Part shown: positions 2,319 through 37,788 of the stretch, one piece after another | How positions within the stretch are numbered: the first letter of the stretch is position 1 | How the letters are laid out: the number at the start of each line of letters is the position of its first letter | Source: Lepidodermella squamata | Lineage: Eukaryota; Animalia; Gastrotricha | NCBI GenBank assembly: GCA_047495785.1 | Contig: JBLDXI010000054.1 | Location: 1,240,001-1,304,000, forward strand | DNA: 64,000 nucleotides | Reading direction: 5' to 3' | Position numbers and translations under genes: made by a program | Notes under the pieces: model-generated | The model's input: only the letters and a program-made list of their open reading frames with translations | Databases searched by the model: none | What the model was told of the DNA's origin: nothing

Positions 2319-5068
2319 TTAGATGTCACGTCCATACATTCGCATTGATTCCCCTGTCTGAAAGGATTTCAAAGAAACAGCTACAACGTTGTGCGTATTC
2401 TCGTGATTTTCGCTTTGCTTTTCTCGCATCTGATAGAAACAAGAGAAACATATGAGAGCATTGTCCAAGCTGATAAGACATACCTTTCCGAGGAAGATAA
2501 GAGATAAATTCATTGCAACACATGCTAGGCTTGTAACATTCAACGCCAATCTTCCGTCGTTTTGTTCCTTGAGAATTGCAACTGCTATGAGTGTGCCACA
2601 TATCAGAAGGAGGAAAGTTCCATAAAAGCACCAGCACACTTGTTTCAAGTCATTGACGGCCGTTAATTGCTTCTGTGAATGAAAAAATTAATGTCCTATT
2701 TGAGGTCGCTTGGGGCAAAAACAAACCGATCTCATAATGTAAGCGAGAAAAGCTCCTCGAATGATAAGGATCCCATAAGCCCCACAGAATACTCCCAAAA
2801 CGCCCTTAGCCAGCGTTGAATCGCCGAAATCACACGAGTAAGTGACGTCTTGAAAAGCAACTGCATCGCTTGGATCCGAAGCTATCGCCGGGCCGATTTC
2901 GATCGCAACTATTGCTGGATTGACTAAGAACCATATCAGCAGTAAAGTTGCAAGGAAAACGATCGCCAATACTGCAACCGTTAGTAGAATTTGGAGAGCA
3001 CGGTAAGGATTGAATTCTTTGCGGCGATGCCTACTCGATCCTCGTTTTGATTGCGTCGTGCTTCTAACTCGCTGGGTACGGCTTTTACTTCGAAAATTGT
3101 CGATTATGCTGTTGAAAATCGACCGGCCTTCATGTCTCGATTTCTTTGCGGTTGAGACAAATATTTTGAAGCCGAAATGAAGCTTAGCAACCATTCCGTA
3201 CAGAATGAGAAATACGCCTGGAAGAAGAAAGCTGAGAGCTGACATGCATTGCGCATTCATCGATGCTTTATAATCGGGTAGTTGGACGGCTATTGACGCC
3301 AAAAGTAGTACGTTTCCACCGAGGATGAGGATATTGAGTACTGGTACGGAATTTCTTATGACCGGCGAGTTTCTTCGATGATATTGAAATATTACGGTCG
3401 CAATTACAGCAAGTAACTCTATGCTGCCTATAGTTATGATTGCGATGTAGACGCTCCTTTCAAAAATTGGCTGCTCAACCTGAACTATTCGTATGGAATC
3501 AGCTGGAGGTCTGCGACTGGGTGTTCTCCAGATAAGCGGCGTCGGCCCTAGACTTATCCGCCTGGTCACGCTTGAAAATGTCCCGATAAGTCGCATTTCC
3601 AGGTTATTTTGCACAGTTTGATACTGGAAAAAGCCGTACGTTGTTATACCTCCAGTATTTCGGGTAGTATTCTTCTCGAAACCTATCAAGCCATACTTTC
3701 CAACAGTTCGTGTTTCAAAAAGAGCGGTCTTGATTGTATCAGCTATTATTGAGCCATTGTTCTTGAAGTTCGGACTATCTGTTGTCCAGTCTACTAGAGA
3801 TTGATTTCGTTTCCTAAGCATTCCTTCAGTTGTGTTGAGAACGTGGATCGCGAGTAACGCAACGTCATAGTAGTAGTTTTTCATATTCCAAGCGGTGGAT
3901 CTCGGGGAAACATCGACCCGTGAGCTCATTGCAAGGTCGAAATCAGTACCGCTATTCCCAAGTCCATCAATAACCTCCATCTGCCCCAATCCCATCGTGG
4001 TCGAACTTCCATAAACAAAAACGCTTAATAGCACCTCACGTAACATGTCAGGCGTACACCATGGCTGTATTCGCATCTGATCCGTAGGCTGGAATGCGCT
4101 GCCTGTTGAAATGAAAAAGGCATAGTTTGGACCAAACATGCCGTACCGGTATAGCCAACACGCAACCCGAGATGGATACAGGGAAGTTATGATAATGATG
4201 CGAGGATCAACCCTTTTCATTTCTTCGACAGCCACTCGCACATCATCGGACTCGGTAAGCTGGCCATAGATCCATTGAATTTTGAAAATTCCGAGGGTTT
4301 TTATGCCGTATCGAGCATCGAGCATAACGGAAGCATCGCTTTCTAGCGTGTTGAGAAGACCGTAATTTTCCGAGATCTGGGCAATGTTACGCCATTTCAT
4401 CATTGTCATGAAAAGGCCAACGGCTTCGTAAACATCGCTGAAAGACGGCGCGAGCACAAATAGATTGCGAAAGCGTTGTCGTTCGAAATCGACTTCATAC
4501 ATTCCAGTTGAGGGAGTGAGCTGAATATTAGATATATTATAGCAAGCTCAATCGGAAAAGGTTCTAAACTAACCCCGATGAAATTCAAGATAGGCATCGT
4601 TTGACCGGTGAAGTAATGAACTGGGCACATTGAGTTGATAATTAGAGGAAGCCGACCTTTAACCCGATCATTCTTATCCATCTCAGAAAAGAAAGCGCGA
4701 ATTCCCGGGGGTCGGCTACACTGTGAGTTTGAAAACAAAAATAGAAACATGACCGACTAAAATTCATTCCTCACCTGATCATCGATTATATCAACCGCCA
4801 AATCGTAGCCAGATAACAGGCTAGGCACGTTTCGAATGCTCTCCAAAGCATAGCGAATTGCCTCAGTGCAAACTGGTCCGACAGGCATGGCGAAACCTCC
4901 ATAGTTGCAAGAAGCAATAATGCTTATCACTTTGTTGCTTGTGGCATTAGTCTCGTTAATAGTTGACGAGATCACTCTAGCTGGCATTGAGCTGTTTATG
5001 CTCAACTTGATGGCCGCGGCGCCGTTGAAAGTTTGAAGTAATGAAATAAACAATAAGATGATCATCAT
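2319..5068 (-). CDS. Receptor G2: GABA-B-like class C GPCR, multi-exon, apparently intact
   Basis: Signal-peptide exon (MMIILLFISLL..GPVCTEAIRYALESI..DIIDDQ), exon CSRPPG..GQTMPILNFIG, long exon (ORF 2688..4502) and TM6-7 exon (ORF 2319..2648), separated by short GT-AG introns. Confidence 0.85.
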
Positions 5069-6729: not shown

Positions 6730-9210
6730 ATGTTTTACAAATTTGTTGTGTATTCATTGCTGCTGACAAAATGTCACTGAAAACCCCGATTCCAGATATT
6801 GTTACATACTGCGACAACGCTCAGGAATAACACACAAAAGACAGTGATAACTTTGCTATCAATGTGCCAGTACGCTAGCCCTATTCTCGCTTTGGGGCCC
6901 CTTTGTACAGAAGCTATGAGTTATGCACTGGACAGCATCAAGAAGATGCCGAATCTCCTCGCAAATTACGAGCTTGTATTTGAACCTATCGACGACATGG
7001 TGAGTCTCCAATCCACCCAAAAGATCGCCAATTCTCACTGTATCATTCTAGTGTATAAGGCAGGTTGCAGTTTCGAAATTCCTATCTGAAATGCAAAGAG
7101 GAGAAACCAAACAGATTTCCTCTTATTCTTGGAAACATGTGCGCCGGTAATTTCTACACTGGTCAAATGATGCATCACTTCGATGTAGTATCAGTAGGTT
7201 TCTATTATTTAGATGATGGGAATTCCACTTATTCTTTTGATTTCCAGATTGTACCAGGGGTATTAATGCAGGAGGGCCACATGCATAGAATACGTTTTCA
7301 GTCTATTTTTCCTATTTTTCCGAAGCTTGGGACGGAACTTGATGCTCTGGGTAGCTTCTTCGGTGTCATAGGATGGCGGAAAATTGCAATTTTCTCAGAG
7401 CACAGCGATTACATGAATCAGATAGAAACAAATCTTATGTTGAAGTTCGAGAAAACTGGACTCTTAACTGGAATTTTCAAAACCCCCTACAACAACGGAG
7501 CTCCGGCAGAATCGAGCCACATTGAGATCACTCTGATGGAGATGGTGAAAGTTAGGCCTAGGATAATCATCATCAATTCTGTTATATCTGTCAGAATAGC
7601 TTGCTGGTTACATCGATTCAAGTTATTCGGGCCTAATTACGTGATTTTTATACCCGCTATTCCAGCATTCAACCCCGAAGACCCGCAACGATACGAATGG
7701 TGTACCCCTGATATGCTGCGAGAGCTTTTACCAAGCGTATTCTCCTTCGGGCTAACGAACAGAATGAATCTGAATCAAAACGAAATGGTTGATTCTCTGG
7801 GTAATACTGGGTATGATTTCGACAAGGCGATGATGGAACGCATCGACAACCCAATGAACAACCCTAACTGGTTATCCCTTCGTCATCACTTCTATGACCT
7901 TGCGTTGCTTTCTGCCTATGTATTAAATGGAACTGAAACGATTCTTCAGAAAAGTTGGTTTCATTAATCATCCTTCGCATTTTATTTATTTTTATTCAGG
8001 GAATGAAACACTCTCCAACTGGTTCACTCAAGCCTTCACACAAGCTCCTGTGGCGCTTTACGACATGCAAAAGAAGAAGGTCACTCTGATCGGCTCAAAG
8101 ATAGTTTGGCCCACCCTTAGCGGGAATCAGTGCGAACCATCGTAATAGAACAATCCTTAGTCCCTATTCTCCCGTACTCAATCTTCACAGCTTTGGGCTG
8201 TTTTGGATTGATCGCTTTGATATTAATTGCCAGCTTCACATTGTTAAAGCGCAGGAGCTCTATTATCGCTAATTCGACTCCTAAACTGAATGCATTTGTG
8301 CTAATCGGAGACTGCATTTTACTATTAACAGAGATAGTTCAAGGGCTGAATCTGTACGGTTCCCACTGCTCTATTTTTCTGTTCGCAACAATGCTACTGT
8401 CAATTGGAATAGCCTGTGTCCTATTTGGCTTGATCTCGAAGCTTGAGTTGGGACAAATGATCGCCGCAATCTCATACTATAAGCTTAGACGGAATATCAG
8501 AAACAAAAGAGCCCTTTCAAATTCGCTTCTAGCTAAACGCATCCAAATCTTCGTAATAATCGGTGTTTGTTTGGTTGTTATCTGCGTCATCCTCGGAGTA
8601 ATCTGGTTTACATTAGATCCCGTTGACGTCGCGATAAAGATTTGGCAAATGGAAGCAATTCAGATGGACGATTCCATCGAGTACCAGACTGTCACCCATT
8701 TTTGTGACCTTAATTCGTCTTATGCAACCAAGTTTGTAGCTCCGGTTTACTGTTTGATCTTCGCAATTGGCGCCTTACGTGGCAGTTATTTGGCGATAAC
8801 CCTAAAACCGGTAGGTTCGATACTTCGAATGGCTTCACAATTTCTTGCGATTTTAGGAAGAAACGCTGCATTTGAGCCATTTTTATGACAGTTTTATTCA
8901 TATCTATTCTGTTTTTGCAGTACACCTTCGAGAACATCACAGATTTCAGTCGAACCATACAAACGTTTAACGGAACAATCGTTTTACTGGTAGGCGGGTT
9001 CGTCGTTTCTTGGGCAATTTTCAAAGACCCGCTCTATCAACGACTAGCAATAACGACGATGAATTACCTTTGTGTAAGCCTCAACATCCTACTTCTCTTC
9101 ATTCATAAGGTAAGCAATGCGTTTGATCAGAATTGAACATCAAGCCAAATAGTTTGCCATTTCATTACAGATTCGGAGGAAGGGCGCATAGATGATTTTA
9201 TACAAAACTG
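6730..9210 (+). pseudogene. Receptor G3: pseudogenised GABA-B-like GPCR, close paralog of G5
   Basis: Compared with G5 (31746-34642): frameshift near 6798, frameshift near 7095, a deletion of about 180 bp near 8028 (NWFT joined directly to QAFTQAPVALY) and a frameshifting deletion near 8128. Confidence 0.8.
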
Positions 9211-11522: not shown

Positions 11523-13903
11523 ATGCATCAGCCAATTCTCGTCTCCTTACTCCTTATTCTCGCCGTGAATTCGATTGTCATCGTTTCGTTGCCTCAGGAC
11601 GAAACAATGATGCGAAAACAGGTGCATCTGCACCTTAATCGCGTAAAGCGAGAGGTTGAAGGTGTCGTAAAGACCGAGCCGGTCGAGCCGCAACAGCCAC
11701 CACCACCGCCGCCGCCCCCGGCCCCACCAGTTGCCCAAGGACAACCTGCTGCTTCTGCTGCTGCTGCTCCAGCTACTGGCGCGATTGTTTCTGCTTCGGC
11801 AGCTGCTGCTGACGCCTCTAGTAGTAACGACACCGAGCCCCAAGCGGCGGTCAGTGAATATCCGTGGGACTTTCTTTACACGTTTGCGCGTCAATTTTAT
11901 ACAAAAGTTGACGGTATGAAAGGCGCCACTGGTTTGAAGGATTGCATCTTTAGCAAACTGGATGCAATTGCAAAAGTCGAAAATTCATGCGCGTGTGTCC
12001 ACAACGGCACGGTGCGATCGGAACGCACCATCGACATGTTTTCGTGCTTTTATCCAGATTCATGCAAAGCAGACTGGCCTGTTGTCGATTGCTTGGCACA
12101 TTTAATCAAAGACAAGATTGAAGCACCGGTTATTGGCAATTTGCTGACCATATTCAACGAAGTTGAATATTTGTGCTGCTTTGCACGGCATGCAAATGCC
12201 AAAATGCTATTTTCGACCGGCGCCAAATGGTGGACTCTGCCTCTGTCTGTCAAGAAGGAGAAGGAAGAATGTGCCAGCCATGAGCTAGTGCCGACTAATC
12301 TTGCATCTCAAGCAGGGGTTGCAGCAGCGTCCAACCCTCAAGCGAGCGGCGTCAAAACCGCCGACAGTAACACTGAGCGGTTGCTAGCAACCATGGCAGC
12401 TGTACTTCGGCAGCAGGCGGCAACAACTGCTTTAGAGCCTCATCAACCCAATTCGTTGTCATCGCTATCAGTGGCGCTTGCGAAAAGTGAGGCTGTTGAT
12501 CAATTGGTGTCTTCTCAGCAACAAAATGGTCATGTGGAGGCGGTTCGCGTTTCACCGTTGTTTGCCGACGCTTATGGCGACGTTTCAGCTCAGTCGTCAT
12601 CGTCATCGTCACTCCAAGGAATGCCTAACTCGGCTTCGCTTCAGCCCGTGTCACTGACCTACTTTGACACGGAAAAGTCTTCAAAAATTGACGCTGTTGC
12701 GGGTAATAATGGAGGTGATCCTAAAAAGGGCAAGAACGGCGCCTTGCCCTGTACGCTGAGAGATAAAGCACCTGGTCAACGGGCTTTAGAGTCGCTACGG
12801 AACTATCAGGGCGTCAACAAGCCTTGTGTCATGGCATGGCTCGAATTTGTTGCCAGCGATGAAGGCTGCCCGTGGCCAGTACCTGAATCTAGTCGCTCAC
12901 TGCTTGCAGCTGTCTTGTTCAACTGCCAGCAACAGGCCGACGTGACAAGAGTACCTCATGATTTGCCCTTGAACCAATTAGTCGCGCTCATTGGCACCGA
13001 TCAGATTCGTCTAAACTTGCTGCTGCACAACTACCAGCAAGTGAACGATTTGTGCTGTTTTTATAATTACACAAAAACTACTTGGACGTCCTATGCTCCC
13101 GTAAGTACTAGAGGAAAAACTGACAAATTTGTGGTTGTTAATTTGTTGCGCTTCCTCTGTTATTATAGCTTTTACCCGAGTACGCCCATTACATCTTTGT
13201 GGAGGTATTTTTCACCAAGTTTGTGGTGGGCAGTTACGTGCTGGCGAAATCTGCCATAGAAAAATCGGCTGGCTCTATCAACTTGCTGAGGTTGATTCTC
13301 TCGCAAGTGCTGCCCGTTTTCACCAGCGACCTGGTTAGCTATCAAAAACTCTATTACGTTGTTGTAGCTATTGTCATCTATTATACGCGTCGCTTTTGCA
13401 TGTTTTGGCATAGCCTTGGTCCTCTATTGGCAGTCGAAATGCTGCTGGTCAATTGGCGAGAAGGCATAGAGAGCGCCGGTGCCGACCTGCATCTCATCAT
13501 CATTTTGACGCGGTCGTTATTCCTATACTACGGCTACTTGCAATGCAAGCCTGGTGGTGGCGATTCTGACGCGGCGTCTGTCGACTGGTTTCGATGGCTC
13601 AAATCGCTGAGACTGCGCCGAGCAGCGAATGCTCCACTCGTTGTTGAGCAGGCTGTTGAACAGGCTGGCGCCGATGATGACGAGTCGAGCCAGGTACAGG
13701 CTCTCGAGGACTGCATGGAGACTCTTGTCAAGACCATGGTAGTGCTCGACCCCAAGCTCAAACTTGCAAGAGGCAGAAGAAAGGGCGAAGGGACCTCAAG
13801 GATGGTCAGCGACCTCGTCGAAAATGTCATGAAATTTCCGGTCCCTGATGGCAGTCCATCTGCTATACAGCAGCGATTGGAAAGAAAAGCCAAGGCAAAA
13901 TGA
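11523..13903 (+). CDS. KAR5/GEX1/Brambleberry-like nuclear membrane fusion protein (about 770 aa; exons 11523-13100 and 13169-13903), transposon cargo
   Basis: Signal peptide and two Cys-rich domains. The second (PCVMAWLEF..GC..ESSRSLLAAVLFNCQQQAD..NYQQVNDLCCFY) resembles the Brambleberry/KAR5 CRD (C..L...C..E..LA.L..LFNCQ..C). The C-terminal TM cluster YYVVVAIVIYY..LLAVEMLL..IIILTRSLF resembles GEX1 TMs. A phase-0 GTAAGT..TAG intron joins ORFs 11523 and 13199 in frame. Confidence 0.72.
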
Positions 13904-14352
13904 AAAATCAATCGGGCTAAATCACGCACGGGGCCGAAACGTAATTTTGCCTGCTCTTCTTCTTGCAGCCGCTCAGCTAATAACATCTCTTTAATATTTA
14001 GGTCATCAACCGCTACGATTCAGCCGTCATTTCTTAAATAAAATCGATCTAGTTTAGCAATATATTTTGTTGTTCTTGTTCTTGCCTTTTTTTTTACTCA
14101 TGAAAACTCTTGGCTTGAAACTTGCCGCTCAATTTTAATTCGCTTTTGCCTAAAAAAAGTCTACCTTAATTTGTACGTTGTTTATGTTGCTCATAATAAT
14201 GAAAGAAAAAATCAAATGATTAGGTAGTAGACTTGATTAAAGTTGGTCTCAATAAAGTTGATACAATCGAACGGCCGTTCTGTCCGTTCCGTTCCGTCTT
14301 CTTCTGTTTTTCTGTTGATTACACTAGGTATTTTTTTAAATTATGCATGTTG

Positions 14353-17300
14353 ATGGCTCCAAGAACTAGTAAAGCTCCAAGTAACGGCGAAAATGAAGCG
14401 AAGCAACCGCTTCCGTCTTACATCAATCCGAAACCCCGCCCAGTGAGTTATTTACAATTTTATTTCCTGAACGAAATCAATCTCATTTTTTAGTCAAAAC
14501 GCCATGTTATGGAATCTGCTAAGAGAAACGCTGGCAAAGCCTACCTGAGGAAACAATTGGTTCGAGATGGGAAGATTATTCGCCAAGCGAAAATGGTCAG
14601 AGCTAAAGTTGGGCGAAGAATTAGTTGCAAGTGTGGGCGTGAATGCTATTCAAAATTTTCTGAAAATCAGTGCGCTGCCGTTTGCCGGGCTGTGTGGAAA
14701 TCTGGCAAAATCAAGGACAGACGGACTTTTGTGTGCCGTTTTGTTACCATAATTGAAGGCCGGCGCAATTTTCGTTATGCACTCCCGGGCGAAACTAGGA
14801 AAGATACTGCAAGCCCTCGCAAGCAGTTTGATGTTGAAGTAAGTTTCTCTTTTTCTAGCCCCCGGCCAACTTGAAAAATAATTTATCCCAATGAATAGGT
14901 GTGCTGCCCTTTTTTCTTGGCATGTACCGCGCTGACTCATCGATTTATCGGCTACACTCTACAATTCAAACAGGCTCCGTTTCGTTCGGCAGTTCTTGAA
15001 GATGGGCGGGGCAGGAAAAAGGGCAGAACCGGAATTTCTAAACAGCAGCTTGAAGATGTTACTTCGTTCATTAATGGAATCGAACGATTGCCGTCGCATT
15101 TCAAACGAAAAGAGTGCAACAAGCAATTTATTGACAGGTTTCTTGCGATATTTTTTCAAAGCAAAATTATGGAGTTTTATTGCAATTTTCAATAGCTATC
15201 ATTCCATCGCGTCGCTTTATCGCGACTATTGTGATCATCTAAGGAAAAGGAATCAAGTCGAACTCGAGGAGGCCGCTTCGTCATCTGCTTCGACATCCTC
15301 CAACAGCGGTATTGCGCCAGTTCATTACGAAACGTTTAGAAGAATTTTCAGAAATTGCTTTCCCGATTTATCATTCAGAAGGCCCAAGGTAGGTCTCGGA
15401 TCGTGTCAAGTGTTTCGTTCATCCCTTATCGACGTTGTTTCAGATTGATGGCTGTAAATTTTGCCAGCGTCTCGCCAGCTTGTCAAAAGCAGATGTTGGC
15501 CGGAATAATCAAGGGCGCATCAGGAGGTTGCTTGAAAAACACTTGGCCAGACGCGATAACGCACGAGATGCGCTTCGTCGAGACATTGCATACGGCGAGG
15601 CTCACAAGCATCGCGTAAACGTAATCAATTTCGATTTCCAGGTATGCTAAACCAAAATCTCCCTGCTAACAGCCTCTTGAATTGATTATTTCCCTGTTGC
15701 GTTGATAAAGCGAAACCTTGAAGTGCCGTGCTGCAATCGCAAGTAAGTTGTTTTCAACATCTTTCCTGCCCATCTGGGTTTTGCTTAGAGTTTTTTCCCG
15801 GGAAATTTATTCTGACAACTAACTGATGCTTCTAATATGGAAGCTTGATCGTTGATGAGCTCTCAAGTTTGGATATTCAGGACATTGCTGATTAAAGAAT
15901 TAAGATCATAATTGTTTGTTATGTTTGCATTATTTTAGGTTCCACAGTAAATTGCTGGTTCGAAATGTTACTGTCTATAACACGACAACAAAACAAACCC
16001 ACAATTACATTTTCGATGAGACGGAAGATGAGTTCAATTTCTTGCTGATTTCCAGTTGGATTGTTTACATTTTTCTTTCCCTACTCTAGCACGTGGGAAA
16101 GGCGTCACGGAGGTGAGCAACAAATTTATTGTATATGAAAAATTCACGATGCATTCACTTTTTTCAGGTTGCAACTGTAATTTATCGTTACCTCACCGAA
16201 GTGATCGACCCAAACGTTGAGCATTGCATAATGTGGTCTGGTGAGACGAATTTCTTTTTTTATTGATGTCATATTAGGCTTCATTTCGATCGAAACCTGA
16301 ATGTAGATAAAAAATTTGAATTTAGACCCTGAATTTGAGGCCTAGCCTTATAGCAAGGTAAAAAACGTATTTACTACCTGAGTGCTGGCATATGAAAGCG
16401 AAACGGGAGTGGGGGGAGTGGTAGTGCGACGCTATTCTGTATTTTCATTTATATTGTTTTTTGTTTCATTTATCAAAAGATAATTGTTCAGGCCAGCAGA
16501 AAAACAAATATTTTCCGAATTTGATTCATCATGCCCTGGCCACGGCTGCTAGCATGGGCCGAAAGCTATCTCTTGTTGAGCACAAGTATTTAGTGGTGGG
16601 ACATTCACAGCAACCAGTTGACAGGTTTGTTTCAGCGTATTACTTGAACATGCCGGAAATGCTGGATGATGTTTTTTCCAGCTGTCACGCCGCAATCGAT
16701 CGCCAAATGAAACGAGTTCGCCTCATAGCTACTCCCAACGAATGGAGAGGTAAAACTTGGCTTTTCGCGATTTTTTGTAAATTTCTTTACCTTGGAACAT
16801 TGGCCTCAATTAGGCATAATTCTTGGTTCGAGTGTTCATCCTGGAATAAATTTCAAGCTTATTGAATGCCATTTTAATGAATGGTTGAATCCGAAACATG
16901 AGCCTAGGTGAGTTTTTTCCTCGAAAAGGTAAAGGTTCCCTTGAGGCCATTATGTTATAAATAAACTCAGCTTCACTGCGCGATTCGACTATCCTACTCC
17001 GAAGGGTGAACGGAGCATTTGGACAAGATACTGCTGCTACAGGTAAGCTCTTTCGAATTTGAGCACGAAATAGGCTGGTAGTTGGTAGTAGAAATCGGCG
17101 TTTCAGGTTTCCCTTCTTTATGAATTCTGAACTCTTGGGTATTTTAAAGAGGAATTCAGCTCAGCCATGTTGGAAATTCGAAATCTGCTGCTCGGATGAG
17201 CTAAGGGCTTGGGGAAAGCTAGGATTCGCCCTTCTTCAGTCAGTAAATCATTCCAATTCAATGTATCCCATTTTTCGTTTCATAAAAATTATCCAAACTT

Positions 17301-18470: not shown

Positions 18471-20036
18471 ATGACCTTGATGCCGATAATTGCCGCGTTT
18501 GTCCCATTATTTTTTGGCGCTGAGTGTCACGTGATCGCGATTGGCCGTTATGTTCTGCCGGGTGATGAAATGACGCTGGTTAAATCGTCTCTCCGCGACG
18601 TTCAAATTTTCCAAGTTGATCCGATCGATTTTGATTTCTTCAAAATCTGGCACGTTAGCAAGGTAGTGTACCCAAGCATTGAATTCACGTTGATGAAGAA
18701 ACTTGAATTTATAATAATTTTTAAGGTGGTTTTCCGGCCGCTTGAGGAAAAGCGAATGACAATCACAGTGAACAAGCCTGATCTCACCGATGATCGACTT
18801 ATAGCCGAAAGATGCGCGAATTTTACAACCCAATTTATCGAGGATTTATACTACCTCTCGGCGCGAACAATGGGTGTTTACAATGGATCGCAAGTCATCG
18901 CAATGGACCCTTTTGAAGCAGCGCTGATAGCTGTTTGTTATCATGATGGCAGTTACTTCATCAGCAATCATCACGCTCAACTCTCGTTACAGAATTTGGT
19001 CATGACTCTTGTAGGCTTGGTGCTTATTTTTCTTGGCCCTGTTATCGCAAATCAAGGGTGGCTATTTTACTCGTTCGGGGGCTGTCTCGGCCTAATAACT
19101 TCTGTCTTATCATTGTTGTTCTTAGTTTGGAAATGTTCCTCTTCACTGTTGAAAAAATCACCCGCGTCTGCTCTGGCAGGCACTTTATTTGGCAGTTCAA
19201 TGTTCACGCAAATTCTTACAAAAATCTTCGTAGATACAAACATAAGTTTTTATGCTTTGTTGCTTCTCGTTATCTCTGGCTCGCTGGGATTTTCGTCATT
19301 TTATTTGATTGGAGCTATGAATGCGAAAAATGAGCGATTGTCGTTTATTATCAAGTTTCACAGCGTTGGAATAGGCTTTTCTTTGTTGCTATTTCTCAGC
19401 GGTTTTAAACGTTTGGAAATCAGTCTGGCTGCATTTGTTGTTTTTGTTTTAGCTAAAACTTCGTTCTTCTCGACACTTTTTCGTACACTTCTATCGTCTC
19501 CTATTGCTGCCTTGATAAAGATTGGATTCCTGATTAGATGGATTGCTCTGATATGTCTAAAGCTCTTGAAATGCTTAAGGTGGCTGGTTTGCTCCCTGTT
19601 TTTCAAATTCGCATCGCCAAAGAATGAAGAGAGAGCCTCTGCAATTCTAAGTGCGTCTGAGTGTGACGAGACAAAGAAATCGTGCACTGCTGTCACTATC
19701 GATAGAATGGATTATTTGAAAAACTTTAGCTCCTTTCATAAAAATGTGTTACTTGTCCCACCTTCCGAGTATCACGAGAAAGCGTTGATCAAAACTAAGC
19801 TTGAACTTGATAAATTATATGCTTATTGCAAAACGATTGATGCTTTTCAGCTGATGCAACAACTGTATTATGAACCCATAAATTTTGCTAGAGCGGTGAG
19901 CCCTCTTAAACAATGCGTTCTCGGTTCCGAAGTAGGGAAATTTGACGACAAAGCCTTTATGTATGATTTTATTGAAAAACTCGATGATGACGACTCTGAT
20001 AATACTAGCTGTTGTTTCTCTAGTGATGAAGAATAA
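18471..20036 (+). CDS. NEMP/TMEM194-like inner nuclear membrane protein, transposon cargo
   Basis: Signal peptide and TM block GLVLIFLGPVIANQGWLFYSFGGCLGLITSVLSLLFLVWK (NEMP pattern G..LFF....LS....FYY..G...G...S.L...F...K). C-terminal SEYHEKALIKTKLELDKLYAYC..EPINFARAV resembles NEMP EEY..QG..ET..AL.ELR.FC..P..FA.F; acidic tail. Probable in-frame 63-nt intron at 18663-18725. Confidence 0.82.
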   Translation: MTLMPIIAAFVPLFFGAECHVIAIGRYVLPGDEMTLVKSSLRDVQIFQVDPIDFDFFKIWHVSKVVYPSIEFTLMKKLEFIIIFKVVFRPLEEKRMTITVNKPDLTDDRLIAERCANFTTQFIEDLYYLSARTMGVYNGSQVIAMDPFEAALIAVCYHDGSYFISNHHAQLSLQNLVMTLVGLVLIFLGPVIANQGWLFYSFGGCLGLITSVLSLLFLVWKCSSSLLKKSPASALAGTLFGSSMFTQILTKIFVDTNISFYALLLLVISGSLGFSSFYLIGAMNAKNERLSFIIKFHSVGIGFSLLLFLSGFKRLEISLAAFVVFVLAKTSFFSTLFRTLLSSPIAALIKIGFLIRWIALICLKLLKCLRWLVCSLFFKFASPKNEERASAILSASECDETKKSCTAVTIDRMDYLKNFSSFHKNVLLVPPSEYHEKALIKTKLELDKLYAYCKTIDAFQLMQQLYYEPINFARAVSPLKQCVLGSEVGKFDDKAFMYDFIEKLDDDDSDNTSCCFSSDEE

Positions 20037-25655: not shown

Positions 25656-25825
25656 TCATTTCGGCGCTGACTTGCCGCCTGTTTTCGCCCTCGTGCTGGC
25701 AGCGGGTGGCGGGATCGGTTTGATGGCGGCTTGAGGATTGGGGGGAACTTGTTGTTCGCCGCCACTCGCACCACCTCCGGCTCCTCCGTTCCTTCGCTCC
25801 GGCTCCTGCTCCTCTTCGCCTTCCT

Positions 25826-25859
<34 letters not shown>

Positions 25860-26545
25860 ATCGTTGTTGTTATTGTCACCGCCGGCTTGCTGGGCGCCGA
25901 TTGTGGTCGTATCAGCGGTCGCATTGGTGAGCAGCGGTATAGCCGATTCATTCAGCTGGCCTAATCGCGTTGCAGTTAGGTCAGCAACCGCTCCGGCGCT
26001 AGCTCGAACGCCATCGGTAACGATCTGGAGTAGATCAGCGCGAAGGGCGGCCGCGCGAGCTTTTCGAGCAAAGCACCACCTCGCCAGCCTGATGACCTGG
26101 CCGGCAAAGGTGACGATCGCAAAAAACAGAGCGGCGTAAACGGCTGCCCTTTGGGCATCCATTCCGATAGCGTCTCCTATAAATCAGCGATGATAGAATG
26201 TAAACAAAACAAAGGTGATCAATGAATATACTAAGAAAAGCTTCCAACTGCGCCTCGTCTCGGCCACAGTTGGTCGGGCAGCACGGGGCGGGCTGGGAAG
26301 CAGGCGCAGGAAGAGGCGGAGCAGGACCAACAGGCGGGGCGGCGGGACAAAAATTGCACGGCCCGCGAGCCCCTCTACACGCAGCCTCGGACGCGGCTGA
26401 AAAAAAGTTAGCAATCAAAAAACAGCAAACAAACAAATAAAAGTAAATTACTTGTTCTTTCGACGCACGACTGCCTTGAATTGACGGCAACCGGCGCTGC
26501 GCCGCAGCAGCCAATAACAATAAGCACACAAAAATGTAAAGCCAT
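25656..26545 (-). CDS. Three-exon type I membrane protein (259 aa) with Cys/Pro-rich ectodomain, acidic tract and H3-tail-like C-terminus, transposon cargo
   Basis: Exons 26545-26452, 26396-26232 and 26176-25656 are joined by two 55-nt GT-AG phase-1 introns into one open frame: MALHFCVLIVIGCCGA (signal)..CNFCP..CCPTNC..AAVYAALFFAIVTFAGQVI (TM)..D12EEGEEEQE..STRAKTGGKSAPK*. Confidence 0.75.
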
Positions 26546-28143
26546 TCTCATTTCTAAATAACGACACCAATAACAAATAACAAATAAGCAATAACAAGCT
26601 GGTAATAATCGCTAAATTAAAACAATCCATAATGCAATCCTTTGAGCAGGAGCAGGTTTAATCAATTCAACAGCGTCGTCAATGAATCAGAGGTCACAGA
26701 ATTTTGAAAAATTAAACTTGATCAATCAATAAGCACCAACGAGTCGATCCTCGCAGAACTTGGTCCACGGCTGCACACGGGGCCTGGCAGAGTTTGTAGG
26801 CTTGTGGCTCGGGTAGGACAACGGTAATTGCAGTGACCCTGAAGCATCGCAATCATCAAAAAGAAACAAACAAACAAACAAACAAGAGCAAATTGCTTGT
26901 TCGATGATTACATAATGCAGGGCTGCTAGCCGTCGACAGGGGCTAGCACTGCACTGCATTAACAACCATCAACTTTGACAGTAAAACATCTAGGCATAGC
27001 ATAGCATGACATGGTAGCAGGCAAGAGGTGTAAGCTAGAATGCGTTATAATTAATGCTAGGTAGCTAGAAAGTGTACAAGTTCAAGTCTTGTCTTTACAA
27101 CTTGATAGTGTGATCGTTCAGCCTGATCAAATATGCTAATAATCATTGCAGCAGCAGCAGTGTTGTGCAACAAGTGTAGACAAAATGCGCCAAGATGGCG
27201 TATAATCGTATCCATAAATAAACCTGGACGTCCCTACTGCATGCATTCATGAATCAAGTACTTGAATTACAATGATTTGATAGCCTTGACCTACATAGCG
27301 ATTACTTTACTCAATCTAGCAGTGTGTATGTTTGTCACTCCACAGGTACTACAAGTACTACAGATACTACAGGTACTTGATCTGCAGCAATCTGGCAGGC
27401 GGAAAACAATCGCGTGCTTGTCTAGACAGTGGGACACTATCAATAACAAGTATAATGAAAAGCTGAGCTCTACTGACACAGCCAAATGATCGCGTGCCCC
27501 ACACGGACAAAAAAACCCCATAAAACTAGCACACAAACACCCACAACCTAACCGCCATTCAAGTAACAGTTTACCAACTTTGTCTCATAAAAGTTGGCTA
27601 GCAATAAAAAAATTACTATAGCAGACAGTGATGAGTTGTTTGCTTCATCATGTTTATTGTGAACGAGGCCGCCCTACTATACTAGACATTGACCGCTCTA
27701 GCTGTGACCCAGACTTTATTAGCCCCCAAGCATTGCGGCACAACTGAGACGACAATCAACTTTATTGATGTCATTAAGAAGAACGATGACGGCTATCCCG
27801 GCTATCATAATGCGCATCATATGACCTAAAAGACAACAAAAAGTACTACAAAAATCCACGCGATCAACAAAAGGATGGGACGCGGAACGTCTGGTGTCCG
27901 GGGTGTTGGGCGCACGCGTTTTTTTCCGGGATCAACTCGTGCTGTCTGCAAAACCTGCCACGCGACAAAGACCAACGGTTTTTTTTCAAAAGCGTAGCGT
28001 GCTAATGTCAAGGACAAATGCAAACCAAAAAAAGTCATTGAATAATATTCTCCATTTTATTTTAACAATTTATACATGAGTTTAATTATTAAATGAGCGC
28101 TATTTTCACCGCTGTCGACCAAAAACCTGAAAAATGATTTACC

Positions 28144-28165
28144 ACGTTACTCCGGTGTGCCGTCG
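28144..28165 (-). repeat. Right TIR of the Sola1-type element
   Basis: acgttactccggtgtgccgtcg followed by the TSD atgt. Confidence 0.95.
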
Positions 28166-30102
28166 ATGTAGCGCAGCCTTTTTCAGAGCCAGAGATGCCA
28201 ATTCCAACTTTCCGGACATGCCAAAAATAATACATGTAATCCCGAGAAATAGCATTGCCAGAGCCAAAGTCGCTAGAGGTTGGAAGTTTGAGTCGAAATG
28301 CATGGGTTGGAGCAGCACAGAAGTCAGAAGTATCACATTTCCAATCAGGATGAATCGCCCAAGCCCTGGGACGGAAGCTGCGATTCGTTCGTTTGTCTTG
28401 CGACATTTTTCACGCCATATGAAAGTGAAGATGCAAATCGCAAGCAATAAGACTGCTACAGCAGTGATCGCTATGTAGGCGGGAAGTTCGAGAAGCGGGG
28501 AAACTGTTGTCAATAAGTGCACAGTATCTGTGGGAGGCTTTCCGTTAGATGTTCTCCAGACTATTGGCGAGAGACTACAATTTAGCGTTCGGGTCTTTGA
28601 ATAGTAAATGCATATTGGAGATGGTTGGACTTTTTTTGTAATCGGATTCCTTCTCAGTTGAGTCAAGCCCTGTATCGGGCTTCCGCCTGTGTTCAGCGTT
28701 GTATTACTTTCGAAAGCTGCGTCCCCTACTTTCAGCTTGAGGCGAACCGAGAAGAGGGCTTCTTTTATTGTGTCGACGATCAAGCTGCCATTTTGCTTGA
28801 AAAATTCGCCGGCGGTCGCCCATTGCGACAGAGTTAGATTATCTGTAAAAGCAAAACGTCATTATTCGAATCAAACAATCAATTGAATTCAAGGGTTAAT
28901 AGTTTTTAAACTTACTAGATCGTAAAAGCGTCTCGGCTCTGTCCAATACAAACGCAGCAATCATCGTGTTGTCATAACAGTTATGCCTCCTCGTGGCAAA
29001 GAACGGTGAAATTTCTGGTCTTTCTATTCTCGCCATCAGCCAGTTTGCTAAATCCGAGCCTGTATTGCCTAGCGAATCTTTTTCATTGTCCAGTCGCAGA
29101 TCAGTCTGACTGGCACACCCAAAAGCGAATAAACTTTCAAGCACTTCCTCCAGCATACCCTCCGTACACCAATCAAAGCGGGAAGGGTCATTAGGTACAA
29201 AAACGGAAGTTAGAAGGGTAAAAATGACCACGTTTGGCCCAAACAGCTTATAACGATGTAGATAGCAAGCCGCTCGAGCCGGGCTTAGTGCGTTTAGGAT
29301 GATAATCCTAGGATTCACCTTTTTCAAATCTGAAACTGCTTGATCGATGTATTGTGGCTCAGCTAATGTGCCAAGTAGGTAAGGAATCTTAAACACCCCC
29401 AATACCTTCGAGCCGTTTCTCTTTTCGAAATCAGCGATGAACTGTGATTCGATCTGTCCAAAGTAATCGCTACCCTCAGATAAAATTGCGACCTTACGCC
29501 AGTTCATTGAATTGAGGAACTCGTGTAGGCTGTTGTAACAGACGATAAGTTGCGGCTGTGTTACGAAAAAGTTGGAATAGCGCGATCTCATGGTTTGAGG
29601 CTCGCTTTGGACTGCTGTCAGTACGATTCCGACATAGTTGAAATAACGAACGATTTGTCCGGTGTGATAGTTTGCGGTGCTTGAGGGACCCACTGTCAAA
29701 GGCAGTCGATCCGGGACGGAGTCGTTTAATTGAAGCTGGGACACAATTCTTCCAACCCCTAGAGGTCTAGAAAACTGGGGCCAAAAATGACAATATGTAA
29801 TTTATAAAGGTTACATCGCCGCCTACCAAGTCATCGACAAAGTCAACGGCTAATTCATAACCAGAGAGCATGTTCATCTTTTTTACGCTATCGAGAACGA
29901 GTCTGATCCCTTCGGTACAGATGGGCCCGAGCGGCTGAACTGTCCCACCATAGTTAAACGACGCCATAATACTGATCACTTTCCGACTAGTATCATTCGG
30001 GTTGTATGTTGATGAAAAAATTCTAGGCTCCAAAGAAGCTGTCATTGGAATTTTGGCCATTGCAAACCCAGAAGGTAGCAAGAAAATTATTATTGCAAGC
30101 AT
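28166..30102 (-). pseudogene. Receptor G4, 5' part (signal peptide, VFT, TM1-3), interrupted by the transposon
   Basis: ORFs 29767..30102, 28896..29744 and 28139..28783 are collinear with G6/G7. The frame runs KKAALH into TIR-derived RRHTGVTW*. Confidence 0.9.
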
Positions 30103-31745: not shown

Positions 31746-34642
31746 ATGAATATCTGGGCCATTCTTGTTCATATGTTTCTTATCCGTGTGTATATCGCTG
31801 CCGAACAGATTTCCTTGACGAGCCCTTTTCCGGAAAATGTCTCAGCCACGACTCCGAGTAACAGCACAAAAAAGACTGTTATTACTTTAATATCGATGTG
31901 TCACTACTCTGGTCCCGTTTTTGCTTTGGGGCCTCTTTGCACGGAAGCTTTAAAGTATGCATTGGACAGTATCCAGAAGATACCGAATCTTCTCACAAAT
32001 TACGAGCTGGCTTTCGAAACTATCGATGAAATGGTGAGTCGTTAACAGTTTAAGACAGCTGTGAACACTGCTTTCCTAATGCCTTTAGTGCTCCAGGCAA
32101 TTAGCCATAGCGAAATTTGTATCTGAGATGCGAAGAAATGGGGCGAAGTCGGACAGATTCCCTCTCATTCTTGGAAACACTTGCGCCGGTAGTTTCTTCA
32201 CTGGTCAAATGCTGCATCACTACGACTTTATATCTGTGTGTTTTATGACCGTAATGCATTTTCCTTATTGATCTTTTTCAAGATTGCACCAGCTATTCCA
32301 GCGCTCGAGGGCTACACCCAGAGAAGTCGTTTTCAGTCATTCTTCCCCATCGCTCCACAACTTGGGGCAGAACTTGATTCTCTAGGTAGCTTCTTCGGAG
32401 TCATGGGATGGCGAAAAATCGCGATCTTCTCGGAACACGCCGATTACATGAGTGAAGTAGAAACGGCGTTCATGTTGGAGTTTGAGAAAGCTGGATTGTT
32501 GGAAGTAATTGGGATTTTCAGAACCCCCCGCACCATTGGCTCTGCTACCGAATCAAGCCACATCGAAATCGCTATGATAGAGATGGTGAAGGTTAGGCCG
32601 AGAATAATCATCGTCAATTCTGTTATTACTGTTCGAATCGCATGCTGGTTACATCGATTTAATTTATTCGGCCCTAACTACGTTATTTTCATACCCGCTA
32701 TTGCTTCATTCAACCCCGAGGATCCTCAGCGATACGAATGGTGTAACCCTGATATGCTGCGAGAGCTGTTACCAAGCGTATTCTCCTTCGGGCTAACGAA
32801 TAGAATGAATTTGAATCAAAATGAAATGTTAGATTCTCTGGGTAACACCGGGTATGATTTCGACAAGGCGATGATGGAACACATCGACAACCCAATGAAA
32901 AACCCTAACTGGTTATCCCTTCGTCATCACTTCTATGACCTTGCGTTGCTTGCTGCCTACACTCTGAATGCAACTGAAACAATTCTTCAGAAAAGTCAGT
33001 TTTAACAATCATGGTTTCCCATTTTATTCATATAATGTATTCAGGGAATGAAACACTCTCAAACTGGTTCACTAATGGACTCAAGTTTCAGGCATCTGGG
33101 AGAGGAATCTCGGACGTTATAAAACAGGCGTTATTCAACACACGAGTTGAAACGAAAATGGGCCGGATAGCATTTGAACAGAATACAACCTTGAATAGCG
33201 CTGGAAATATTCTTATCGGTATATTCCAATATCGAATTCAGAATGATTCGAAAAACTTCATTCAAGCTCCTGTGGCGCTTTACGACATGCAAAAGAAGAA
33301 GGTCACTCTGATCGGCTCAAAGATAATTTGGCGCACCCTTAGCGGGAATCCTCCTGCGGATTTCGTGCGAACCTTCATTTTAGAGCTGCCTTTAGTCCCT
33401 ATCGACTGCTATTCTGTCATGACAGCTCTAGGCTGCTTGGGAATGCTATCTGTGCTATTGGTGTCAATCTTTGCTTGGTTAAATCGAACGAGTCCTAATT
33501 TCGCTGATTCGACCCCGAAATTGAATTCCTTCTTGCTAATGGGGGACGCTCTATTAGTATCAACCGAGCTGATTCAGGGGAATGATTCACGTAAAAGTAC
33601 CTGCGTCGCTTTCGAGATAGCTAGAATACTGCTTGTAGTTGGAGTAGCTTGCGTGTTATTCGGCTTGGTTTCGAAACTGGAATTAGGACGGATGATTGTC
33701 GTGATCCCAAACGGCAAGCTGAGGAAAAACACTAAATCCAAAAGAGCCATGCTCATGAACTTGCTGTTGTCTAAAAGTACTAAAATCTTCCTAACCATTG
33801 GCATTTGTTTGCCCGCCCTCTTAATCATCATCGGAATTGTATGGTTTGCATTGGACCCAGTTGCAGCCGCGATCAAGATTTCGCCTATCGAAGCGATGAG
33901 GATTGACGATTCAATCGAGTACCAAACTGCCATCTACTTTTGCGAGATTCAGTCGTCCAAAACAACACCAGTTATTGTCGCGATATACAGTTCAATCTTC
34001 GCGGTCAGCGCTTTGCGAGGCAGTTTTTTGGCCATAAGATTGAAATCTGTAAGTGTATCCCCTACTAAATCATTTAGCTCAGGGCTTCTCGGTCCCTAAA
34101 CTCTGACGACCATTCAATCCATAAAACCATAAAAAATTTCGAAATTTGTCAGCCAAAATCAAATCAAATCAGAGTCACAAACCGATTCAAGGAGATTCTA
34201 AAATTGCTGGCTTGAGAAGCCCTGGTAAAGCTCTCCCATTAAGCAAAATTGCCACACGTTTGACATTTGACGAATAACTTTGGCTTTCACCCATGACTGA
34301 ATCCAGCATAAATGTTGTATTCTCTATTGTTGTCTTTTCTTTTAGTGCACACTCGACAACATTAGAGACTTAAAGTCAACCATACAAACGTTTTATGGAA
34401 CCATTCTTCTACTAATCGGCGGGGCCGTCATTACATGGGCGATTTTCCATGACCCACTTTATCAACGTCTGACTATCACAACGATGAATTACCTGTGCGT
34501 TACCCTCAATATCGCTCTTCTCTTCATTCCTAAGGTGACAATTGCTTTTATATAGATCTAAACTCTAAAAATCATGCCTTCTGTTGCATTTTTACAGTTT
34601 CGAAAGAATTCTTCAACCATTCAACGCAAAGGCCCAGTCTGA
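31746..34642 (+). CDS. Receptor G5: GABA-B-like class C GPCR, apparently intact
   Basis: ORFs 31746, 32238 and 33011, plus a TM6-7 exon near 34347-34533 (FYGTILLLIGG..LLFIPK) and a last exon FRKNSS..GPV*. Confidence 0.85.
34080..34224. mobile_element. Small hAT-like MITE in a G5 intron
   Basis: 11-bp TIR CAGGGCTTCTC/GAGAAGCCCTG. The 8-bp flanks atttagct/gtaaagct match only 5/8. The intron is enlarged relative to paralogs. Confidence 0.6.
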
Positions 34643-35162: not shown

Positions 35163-37788
35163 TTAGGCTGTTGTGAACTGAACTTCAGATATAGTGTTTA
35201 TTTTTCGATGATGGTTTCTCAAGCTTGATCCAGCGCGAGACGGTGGCGACTCCAGGGGCTCCAGTTTTCTCATTTTCGAAAAGAAAAGCATACCCAGATT
35301 CAATGTGATGCAGGCGAATATCATAACTGAACACGTTATGCGCTGATAGGAACTTTCCTTGAAAATAGCCCCAGCGATGATTCCCCCGCAAGCAAGAAGC
35401 ATCACAGTTCCGTAAAAGCAGGCTGCATTCACTTTCAAATCCGTAATATGCGAGATTTTTTTCTGCAATCAAAATATGAAGACGATCACTGATTAGATAG
35501 AGACAAATAGCAATGATAACTTACCGATCTGAGCGCATGCGCCAGGAAAATTCCCCTGAAAGTCATGGCCCCAGTGATCAAGCAGGACGCTGCGATGACA
35601 AATTGAGACATGATGGTTGACCCAGAGGCTAAACTGTATTTTATGACTATCCTTTCATATGTGTTATCTGTAACACTTGCGCCAATTGTTTCCACTACCG
35701 TTGGTGGCGATACCACGAAACAAATCAACAGCAGTAGTGAAAATAAAGTCAGTAAAGCCGCTCCAATACCAATTACTGCCATTCTCAAGCTACCAAAACC
35801 AGATATACTACCAACTTTTCCGGAAGAGAAGTTTGTCTGTCTCGAAGATCGACCATCATTTGTTAACATATGTAAAGCAGCTTTTTTCATGGCTAAAGAA
35901 GCCAATTCCAACTTTCCGGACATGCCGAAAAGAATACATGTGATGCCGAGAAATAACATTGCCAGAGCCAAAGTTGCTAGAGGTTGAAAATTAGAATCGA
36001 AATGCATGGGCTGGAGCAGTACCGAAGTCAGAAGTATTACATCTCCAATCAGGATGAATCGCCCAAGCCCTGGGACAGATGTCGTGATTCGTTCGTTTGT
36101 CTTGCGACATTTTTCATGCCATATGAAAATGAAGATACTGACTGCTAACAATACGCCCGCAACAGTTGTGATCGCAATGAAGGCGGGAAGTTCGAGGAGA
36201 GGGGATATTGTCGTCAATAAGTGCACCATGTCTGTGGGAGGTCTTCCGTTCGAAGTTCTCCAGGCTATTGGCGAGAGACTACAATTTAGCGTTCGGGTCT
36301 TCGAATAGTAGACGCATATTGGGGATGATCGGACTTTGTCTGAAGATTTGTCTCTCCTGAATTGAGCGATGCCTTGAATAGGACTGCCGCCTGTGTTCAA
36401 CGTTGTATTACTTTCGAAAGCGACATCCCCGACCGTGATTTTGAGGCGACTCGAATAGAGAGCTTCCTTGATTGTGTCAGCAATGAATTTGCCGTTTTGT
36501 TTGAACAAATCACCGACGGTCACCCATTGCGACAATGTTTGATTATCTGTAAAAACAAAACGTCATAATTCGAGTTGAATGGTAATTGGAGTTATGTCTT
36601 ACTCAATCTCAAAATACTCTCGGTTCTGTTGAGTACAAAAGCAGCCACCAATGTGCCGTCATAGCACGAACTTCTCCTTGTAGAGAAGAAAGGCGAAGTC
36701 TCTGGCTTTTCGATTCTTGCTCTCATCCAATCGGCTACATCCATAGCTGAATTTCCAAACGAATCTCTTTCATTGTCCATTCGTAAGTCTAAACTGCTAG
36801 CGCACCCAAAAGCGAATATGCTTTGTTGCACTTCCTCCAGCATACTCTCCGTGCACCAATCAGTGAAGCGTGAAGGATCATTAGGTACGAAAACGGAGGT
36901 TAGCAAAGTGAAAATAGCGATGTTTGGCCCGAAGAGCTTGTATCGATGTAGAAAACAAGCTATTCGAGCGGTACTTAATGCATTAACAATTATTATCCTT
37001 GGATTCACTTTTTTCAAATCTGATACCGCTTGCTCGATGTATGGAGGTTCAGCCAGGGTACCGAGAACGTAGGGAATTTTGAAGACCCCCAATATTTTCG
37101 AGCCATTATTTTTCTCAAAACTTGCGATGAACTCATTTTCAATCTGTCCAAAGTAATCACTGGCCTCGGATAAGATCGCAACCCTGCGCCAGCTCATAGA
37201 GATGAGGAATTCCTGGAGGCTGCTGTAGCAGGTGATGAGCTGCGGCTGCGCTATAAAATAGTTTCGATATCGTGATCTTTTGGTGTGGGGCTCGAGTTGT
37301 ACTGCCGACAGACCGAATCCAACATAGTTGAAGTATTGGAGGATTTCCCCGGTGTGATAGTTTGTTGTGCCTGACGGACCAATCGTCAAGGGTAGTCGAT
37401 CTGAAATTGAGTCGTTCAGTTGAAGCTGAGAAATGATTCTTCCAACTCCAATCGGTCTGGAAAACTGATAGAACAGATAGAAATATGAATAACCCTAAAG
37501 GGTTTAGCCTACCATGTCATCGATAACGTCAACAGCAAGATCATAACCCGGTAGCATGTTCATTCTTTTCACACTTTCAAGAGCGAATCTGATCCCCTCG
37601 GTACAGATAGGCCCCAAAGGTATAACAGACCCACCATAGTTCAATGCAGCCATAATACTGATCACTTTCCGACTAGAATCATTCGGGTTGTAGGTTGTTG
37701 AGAAAATTCTAGGCTCCAGTGGGGCTGTCAATGGTATCTTGGCCAACGCAGAGCCGACAGTTACCAGAGCAATTACGATTCGAATCAT
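35163..37788 (-). CDS. Receptor G6: GABA-B-like class C GPCR, apparently intact
   Basis: Four exons represented by ORFs 37504..37788, 36592..37389, 35486..36535 and 35163..35468. Confidence 0.87.

Follow-up and report, generated by a model that had tools for sequence, protein, structure and literature searches.

Members of the KAR5/GEX1/Brambleberry family combine a signal peptide, a single N-terminal cysteine-rich domain (CRD) with six cysteines, one to three coiled coils and two to three C-terminal transmembrane segments (TMs) (PMC4291462, PMC7586128, PMC10609895). All six CRD cysteines are reported to be essential and invariant in the family, whose sequences otherwise differ widely and are barely alignable across kingdoms. 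AlphaFold models of plant GEX1 show an antiparallel coiled-coil hairpin that keeps the globular CRD near the TMs, and the Kar5p literature has speculated that the coiled coil is SNARE-like and that molecules are joined across the lumen through the conserved cysteines (PMC4291462). Here we describe a gene at positions 11523-13903 of the forward strand of a 64,000-nucleotide (nt) stretch of Lepidodermella squamata DNA (contig JBLDXI010000054.1; the whole stretch is called the window below). Its predicted product, about 770 residues long, is a membrane glycoprotein of the secretory pathway with two CRDs in tandem. We give about an even chance to the reading that it is a divergent host GEX1/Brambleberry-type nuclear-envelope protein in which the CRD has been duplicated and a coiled-coil hairpin is not evident. 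The points in favour of this reading are its cellular context, a family-like architecture, the cysteine geometry, shared short motifs, a CRD1 model that matches no unrelated solved fold, glycosylation sequons and a basic C-terminal tail. The features of the locus, with coordinates in the window, are as follows.

11523-13259 (+): open reading frame (ORF) A, 578 codons
13199-13903 (+): ORF B, 234 codons
11523-13903 (+): whole gene from start to stop codon in the two-exon model, with ORFs in two frames
11523-13100 (+): exon 1, 526 codons, encoding the signal peptide, low-complexity N-terminus, CRD1, linker and CRD2
11523-11594 (+): predicted signal peptide, residues 1 to about 24, from hydropathy
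11640-11651 (+): RVKR, residues 40-43, fitting the R-x-K/R-R consensus
11676-11849 (+): Pro/Ala-rich low-complexity stretch, residues 52-109
11865-12203 (+): CRD1, residues 115-227, a predicted five-helix domain with eight cysteines (141-219) and one N-x-T sequon
12273-12719 (+): Ser/Ala/Gln-rich linker, residues 251-399
12768-13085 (+): CRD2, residues 416-521, a diverged copy of CRD1
13101-13168 (+): candidate intron, 68 nt, GTAAGT to a pyrimidine-rich TAG, frame-restoring, read from the sequence and a model
13169-13903 (+): exon 2, 244 codons plus stop, encoding a hydrophobic cluster and a charged tail
13190-13543 (+): cluster of three to four marginally hydrophobic helices, the putative membrane anchor, exon 2 residues 8-125
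13544-13900 (+): charged C-terminal tail of about 119 residues, with basic clusters near its end and one heptad-like window
14037-14042 (+): AATAAA, candidate polyadenylation signal, 134 nt past the stop codon

An earlier note on this locus had listed a signal peptide, an RVKR motif, a Pro/Ala linker, a first CRD, a Ser/Ala/Gln linker, a second CRD and hydrophobic segments, and every one of these features is present. The two long ORFs lie in different frames, and their 578 and 234 codons far exceed the length expected from random sequence. We read the locus as two exons joined by a predicted splice, because removal of 68 nt restores the frame and because intron and AATAAA evidence is found locally. 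The 68-nt intron was located by seeking a frame-restoring GT..AG pair, and the splice is accordingly a model. Its donor is a perfect GTAAGT at 13101, its TAG acceptor, preceded by a pyrimidine-rich tract, ends at 13168, and GC content is 0.34 in the candidate intron versus 0.51 in the exons. The two halves of the class C G-protein-coupled receptor (GPCR) genes in the window are separated by candidate introns of 51-73 nt that have a donor of this type. No paralogue of the gene occurs within the 64-kb window. Exon 2 is overlapped by an antisense ORF of 150 codons (13534-13986, minus strand). It is without a Pfam match, and the GC-richer coding strand most likely gives rise to it as a shadow ORF.

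Cysteine spacing was compared with that of the family. The steps between successive cysteines (C1 to C6), followed by the cumulative spans, are listed below.

Kar5p, Cys 56, 68, 91, 105, 116 and 141, from the literature: steps 12, 23, 14, 11, 25; C1-C3 35; C3-C6 50; C1-C6 85
Land-plant GEX1, from the published alignment: steps 12, 20, 13, 9, 23; C1-C3 32; C3-C6 45; C1-C6 77
CRD1: steps 15 (or 17), 19 (or 17), 6, 9, 28; C1-C3 34; C3-C6 43/44; C1-C6 77/78
CRD2, without C4 and C5: C1-C2 14, C2-C3 19; C1-C3 33; C3-C6 43/44; C1-C6 76/77

The cumulative spans of CRD1 and of CRD2 each lie near those of plant GEX1, so that the agreement occurs twice. The corresponding spacing signature, which was defined post hoc, arises in 3% of exon 1 shuffles, and of the window's 35 open stretches that reach 150 amino acids (aa) or more, only the gene's own carries it. 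A visual, post hoc comparison with the plant alignment, to which no E-value attaches, further revealed two common motifs: S/D-C-F at C3, and a helix L-x-x-F/Y-x-E/Q-x-N/E-x-I/L-C that ends at C6.

Beyond the cysteines, the protein shares with GEX1 and Brambleberry a signal peptide (predicted here), a luminal Cys-rich domain whose first and last conserved cysteines are about 77 residues apart, and a C-terminal cluster of membrane helices (three in GEX1, two in Brambleberry, putative here). A basic C-terminal end is common to plant GEX1 and this protein, and the compact helical model of CRD1 is comparable to the "globular CRD" of the GEX1 AlphaFold models. The differences are equally distinct: this protein has two CRDs where the family has one, a long Pro/Ala stretch and RVKR precede CRD1, and a low-complexity linker stands where GEX1 has its antiparallel coiled-coil hairpin, with CRD2 adjoining the membrane without a hairpin of the GEX1 type. 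With Kar5p/Tht1 (PF04163) the common ground is a signal peptide (predicted here), a luminal domain (six-Cys in Kar5p), C-terminal TMs (marginal here) and the same order of cysteines, and the C1-C3 span of 35 in Kar5p compares with 34 and 33 in CRD1 and CRD2. Kar5p differs in its C3-C6 span of 50 and total span of 85, in lacking a C-C doublet, and in having two predicted coiled coils and two clear TMs; no PF04163 match to this protein appears even at E <= 10. The KAR5/GEX1/Brambleberry identity proposed in the earlier note fits in architecture and in cumulative cysteine spans, whereas no tool returned statistical homology, and the GEX1 resemblance is one of pattern only (cysteine spans, short motifs and architecture). 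Tandem CRDs and the lack of an obvious hairpin would indeed make an atypical member, as that note had it, although membership itself is unproven and coiled coils were assessed by a crude heptad scan only.

The luminal part appears to consist of two diverged copies of one domain. CRD1 has cysteines at residues 141, 156, 158, 175, 181, 190, 218 and 219; CRD2, with cysteines at 435, 449, 468, 511 and 512 in addition to Cys 410, keeps C1, C2, C3 and the C-C doublet and lacks the two middle cysteines of CRD1. The two domains align by BLASTP at E = 0.001, with 24% identity over 96 aa and collinear cysteines, and Smith-Waterman comparison gave z = 4.9, a score reached by 2 of 2,000 shuffles. When the cysteines are replaced, z drops to 1.2, so the likeness, which is modest, rests on the cysteine framework and a common L-C-C-F end; on this footing a duplication of the CRD is plausible.

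AlphaFold2 modelling of a 141-residue CRD1 piece, from an alignment in which CRD2 was the one additional row, yielded a compact five-helix domain (helices 6-21, 29-42, 53-67, 78-87 and 92-118 of the piece) with a predicted local distance difference test score (pLDDT) of 70.3 and a predicted template modelling score (pTM) of 0.63. In this model C1 opens helix 2, C3 closes helix 3 and the C-C doublet lies inside the long final helix. Residues 110-526 modelled without an alignment reached a pLDDT of 36.8, unusable as a fold; in this low-confidence model the CRD2 cysteines are placed on helices as in CRD1, and the linker 251-399 contains short low-confidence helices only, of 11-19 residues. The earlier note had held that a better fit of the CRDs to some unrelated family would speak against the identity; a Foldseek search with the CRD1 model returned only noise from PDB and BFVD (none at E <= 1e-3, TM-scores below about 0.4), and this objection accordingly does not arise. 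Helical Cys-rich domains of the Frizzled, saposin and GDNF-receptor types were also considered and set aside, there being no Pfam or fold match to them.

The remaining layout is that of a membrane protein entering the secretory pathway. Residues 5-23, the core of the signal peptide, form the sole strongly hydrophobic segment in exon 1 (Kyte-Doolittle up to 2.8, crude Hessa sum -2.3), the signal-peptide call being one of hydropathy only. RVKR sits shortly after it in a region predicted to be disordered; an RxKR arises in 3.7% of exon 1 shuffles, and two more motifs of the form RxRR occur in the C-terminal tail. Residues 1-109 include 19 Ala and 17 Pro, and the linker 251-399 includes 25 Ser, 24 Ala and 12 Gln. 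N-glycosylation sequons lie within and beside the CRDs. The hydrophobic segments of exon 2 (its residues 8-26, 34-52, 61-79, 76-94 and 107-125) partly overlap; they would make up an uncertain count of membrane spans, most probably three to four. The first segment lies at the start of exon 2, about 20 residues past CRD2, which bears out the position of the TMs "almost immediately" after CRD2; their character as TMs is marginal, as detailed below. The crude heptad scan found one coiled-coil-like window, in the C-terminal tail.

Homology searches, in which each exon was searched separately and the exons were not joined, identified no relative of the protein. Sequence searches of PDB with the single protein and with a CRD1/CRD2 profile gave noise (E >= 0.15), scans of metagenomes and IMG/VR with CRD1, residues 110-526 and exon 2 returned no match, and PHROGs likewise yielded none. 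Pfam showed no family match for either exon at E <= 1, and what lay below the cut-off was noise such as CFAP61_dimer and dynein stalk. GEX1, Brambleberry and Kar5p were returned by none of the searches. As a control, the NEMP-like neighbouring gene was submitted to a word search and gave no relatives either, and an exact look-up of five complete ORFs of the window in a collection of 15 billion proteins found 0 of 5. The source lineage is therefore poorly sampled, and its genome or gene models seem to be missing from public protein sets. Because of this sampling, of the 50-bit floor of the largest search (below) and of a family that is barely alignable, the absence of matches is of limited meaning.

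Several results nevertheless weigh against a place in the KAR5/GEX1/Brambleberry family. CRD1, CRD2 and exon 2 searched separately against Pfam at E <= 10 gave no credible match, PF04163 included; word searches with exon 1, whole or as residues 108-250, found no relatives; and exhaustive phmmer with residues 110-526 against 1.84 billion proteins returned 0 matches at E <= 1e-3, a threshold that in a library of 1.84e9 only scores above about 50 bits pass, so that weaker similarity is hidden. Single cysteine steps depart from those of plants and yeast (C3-C4 is 6 versus 13-14, C5-C6 is 28 versus 23-25), CRD1 has eight cysteines including a C-C doublet that Kar5p lacks, and CRD2 is without C4 and C5, positions reported as invariant. 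The agreement in motifs was recognised by eye after the fact. A signal peptide, a Cys-rich domain and a TM form a layout that is common generally. The exon 2 segments have a 19-residue Kyte-Doolittle mean of at most about 1.6, a value that two of them reach, and charged residues occur in each; and no coiled-coil-like window was found by the crude heptad scan in exon 1, the interval between CRD and membrane included.

Genomic context identifies the gene as an ordinary cellular one, belonging to a eukaryotic source organism whose introns are 50-70 nt long. Nearly all sizeable ORFs of the window are halves of class C GPCRs (ANF_receptor or 7tm_3). On the same strand as the gene, 4.6 kb downstream of it, lies a NEMP-like single-exon ORF of 521 codons (18471-20036, plus strand), which scores 28.6 bits with Pfam NEMP against a cut-off of 28.7. 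NEMP proteins are nuclear-envelope membrane proteins. The neighbour is another signal-peptide-bearing polytopic membrane protein; it has no sequence relation to the protein described here, and the adjacency of two putative nuclear-envelope proteins may be coincidence.

The GC content of the gene, 0.51, exceeds the 0.37-0.39 of its flanks. This excess lies mostly in first codon positions and mirrors a composition rich in Ala, Pro, Gly and Val. Neither terminal direct or inverted repeats around the gene nor linked integrase, transposase, capsid or polymerase ORFs were detected, and the viral collections IMG/VR, PHROGs and BFVD gave no match.

Among the alternatives, we grant a substantial but less than even probability to a lineage-specific, fast-evolving membrane or shed glycoprotein that is unrelated to KAR5/GEX1/Brambleberry and resembles it in cysteine spacing by coincidence. 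The ectodomain of such a protein would consist of two helical modules, rich in disulfides and set on linkers of mucin-like or low-complexity character, and the protein would be routed through the Golgi to the cell surface, a proprotein convertase cutting off a short N-terminal propeptide at RVKR. The empty searches agree with this, as do the cysteine number, several of the cysteine steps and the lack of a coiled coil in the crude heptad scan, and the length and low complexity of the linkers and the N-glycosylation sequons are in keeping with a location at the cell surface. An RxKR right after the signal peptide is uncommon by chance and makes sense only if the protein exits the endoplasmic reticulum (ER). 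This alternative is harder to reconcile with three cumulative cysteine spans that fall within 1-2 residues of plant GEX1 in both CRDs, with local motifs at C3 and C6 that agree with GEX1, and with a multi-helix C-terminal anchor and basic tail that reproduce the family layout; the lack of matches is uninformative here, since the NEMP-like and GPCR neighbours are also without close relatives. Furin-type processing, which the earlier note had proposed for a fusion factor, is a prediction from one RxKR motif and is hard to square with nuclear-envelope residence; the two roles conflict because a resident of the ER and nuclear envelope normally would not meet a trans-Golgi convertase.

It is quite improbable that the change of frame is a true frameshift or an assembly error, leaving a pseudogene or a gene that encodes the 578-residue ORF alone. 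The splice is a prediction, and the intron was found by seeking a frame-restoring pair, which leaves room for this view; against it stand the perfect donor and the pyrimidine-rich tract before the acceptor, a fall in GC that coincides exactly with the 68-nt stretch, a length typical for this locus, and 244 open codons downstream whose GC at third codon positions (GC3), 0.58, is the gene's highest. We attach next to no probability to a copy that is borne by a virus-like or mobile element and has been reshaped so as to disturb or exploit nuclear fusion in the host. Its atypical architecture, a GC of 0.51 versus 0.40-0.45 in neighbour genes with a GC3 of 0.49-0.58 versus 0.42-0.49, and, 0.3-3.5 kb downstream, what look like the decayed remains of a transposon (weak DUF7869 match) might be cited for it, but the GC excess is explained by codon position 1 and amino-acid composition, the intron is short and of host type, every other sizeable ORF is a class C GPCR half or NEMP-like, and terminal repeats, linked hallmark genes and viral-collection matches are all missing. 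The "element-specific" status given to the protein in the earlier note is therefore not supported, given the GPCR array and NEMP-like context, the normal intron and the AATAAA, and nothing speaks for its suggestion that the protein acts as a dominant modifier of nuclear fusion in the host. Whichever identity is correct, the notion of a manipulator of nuclear fusion carried by an element fails.

The surroundings of the gene contain further observations. Class C GPCR genes, at least a dozen of them, form a tandem array on both strands across the window (1-64000). Each gene consists of an ANF_receptor half and a 7tm_3 half, mostly parted by one candidate intron of 51-73 nt, and examples are found at the following positions.

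2-1810, 2688-4502, 7065-8888, 28139-29744, 32238-34099, 35486-37389 and 39681-41623: class C GPCR genes
43845-45845, 46947-48973, 49978-51141, 52939-53787, 55235-57176 and 59116-60933: further class C GPCR genes

Pfam scores of these genes are weak (E 1e-6 to 1e-11), and for this reason we regard the array as a strongly diverged, lineage-specific receptor expansion. Derivation of the protein from these neighbouring GPCRs, which themselves combine a nine-Cys domain with seven TMs, was considered and rejected: no similarity was seen, and the predicted fold of the CRD is helical. Between about 14200 and 17500, short ORFs in several frames include a weak DUF7869 match (16461-16865, E 8e-4) and, in the ORF at 14509-14874, a C-x-C...C motif; the region looks like a decayed transposon remnant that is unlinked to the gene, and it showed no terminal repeats. 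A 168-codon ORF at 25656-26162 (minus strand) combines an N-terminal hydrophobic helix with 12 consecutive Asp residues, for which a TCGTCGTCA x4.4 repeat at 25825-25864 codes, and has no Pfam match. The 26-28 kb region shows an unusual AT skew of 0.21. No tRNA genes or Rfam families were found at threshold in the whole window.

Gene model, order of domains, CRD repeat and cellular setting are shown by the sequence; membership of the family, localisation and function are inferred. The predicted luminal part comprises two diverged copies of one helical, disulfide-stabilised Cys-rich domain, CRD1 being carried on a flexible linker of about 150 residues and CRD2 lying about 20 residues from the first hydrophobic helix. 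Three to four weakly hydrophobic helices would anchor the protein and be followed by the charged tail with its basic clusters. If the protein is of the GEX1/Brambleberry type, a working model can be taken from those of Kar5p and GEX1 (PMC4291462, PMC9324357): it would be a resident of the ER and nuclear envelope whose CRDs lie in the lumen, and CRDs on facing membranes may associate, possibly via disulfides, and so couple the membranes in pronuclear or karyomere fusion. The membrane-near CRD2 might then take the place of the GEX1 coiled-coil hairpin, with CRD1 serving as a tethered module that reaches out.

A bolder version of this model is one that we consider rather unlikely. It holds that the protein is a true family member in which the hairpin was lost, the CRD was duplicated and a propeptide is cut at RVKR, and that it forms a germline nuclear-envelope gene pair with its NEMP-like neighbour. 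In that event, CRD-CRD contacts, and not coiled coils, would be the conserved working part of the family.

Should the protein prove unrelated to the family, it would add another lineage-specific membrane glycoprotein, with limited wider interest. A family member with two CRDs and no hairpin, if this is one, would argue for the CRD as the module that KAR5/GEX1/Brambleberry proteins cannot do without. It would also indicate the extent of divergence through which the family can keep its cysteine geometry, and would help to locate "missing" orthologues in animal lineages that have no annotated one.

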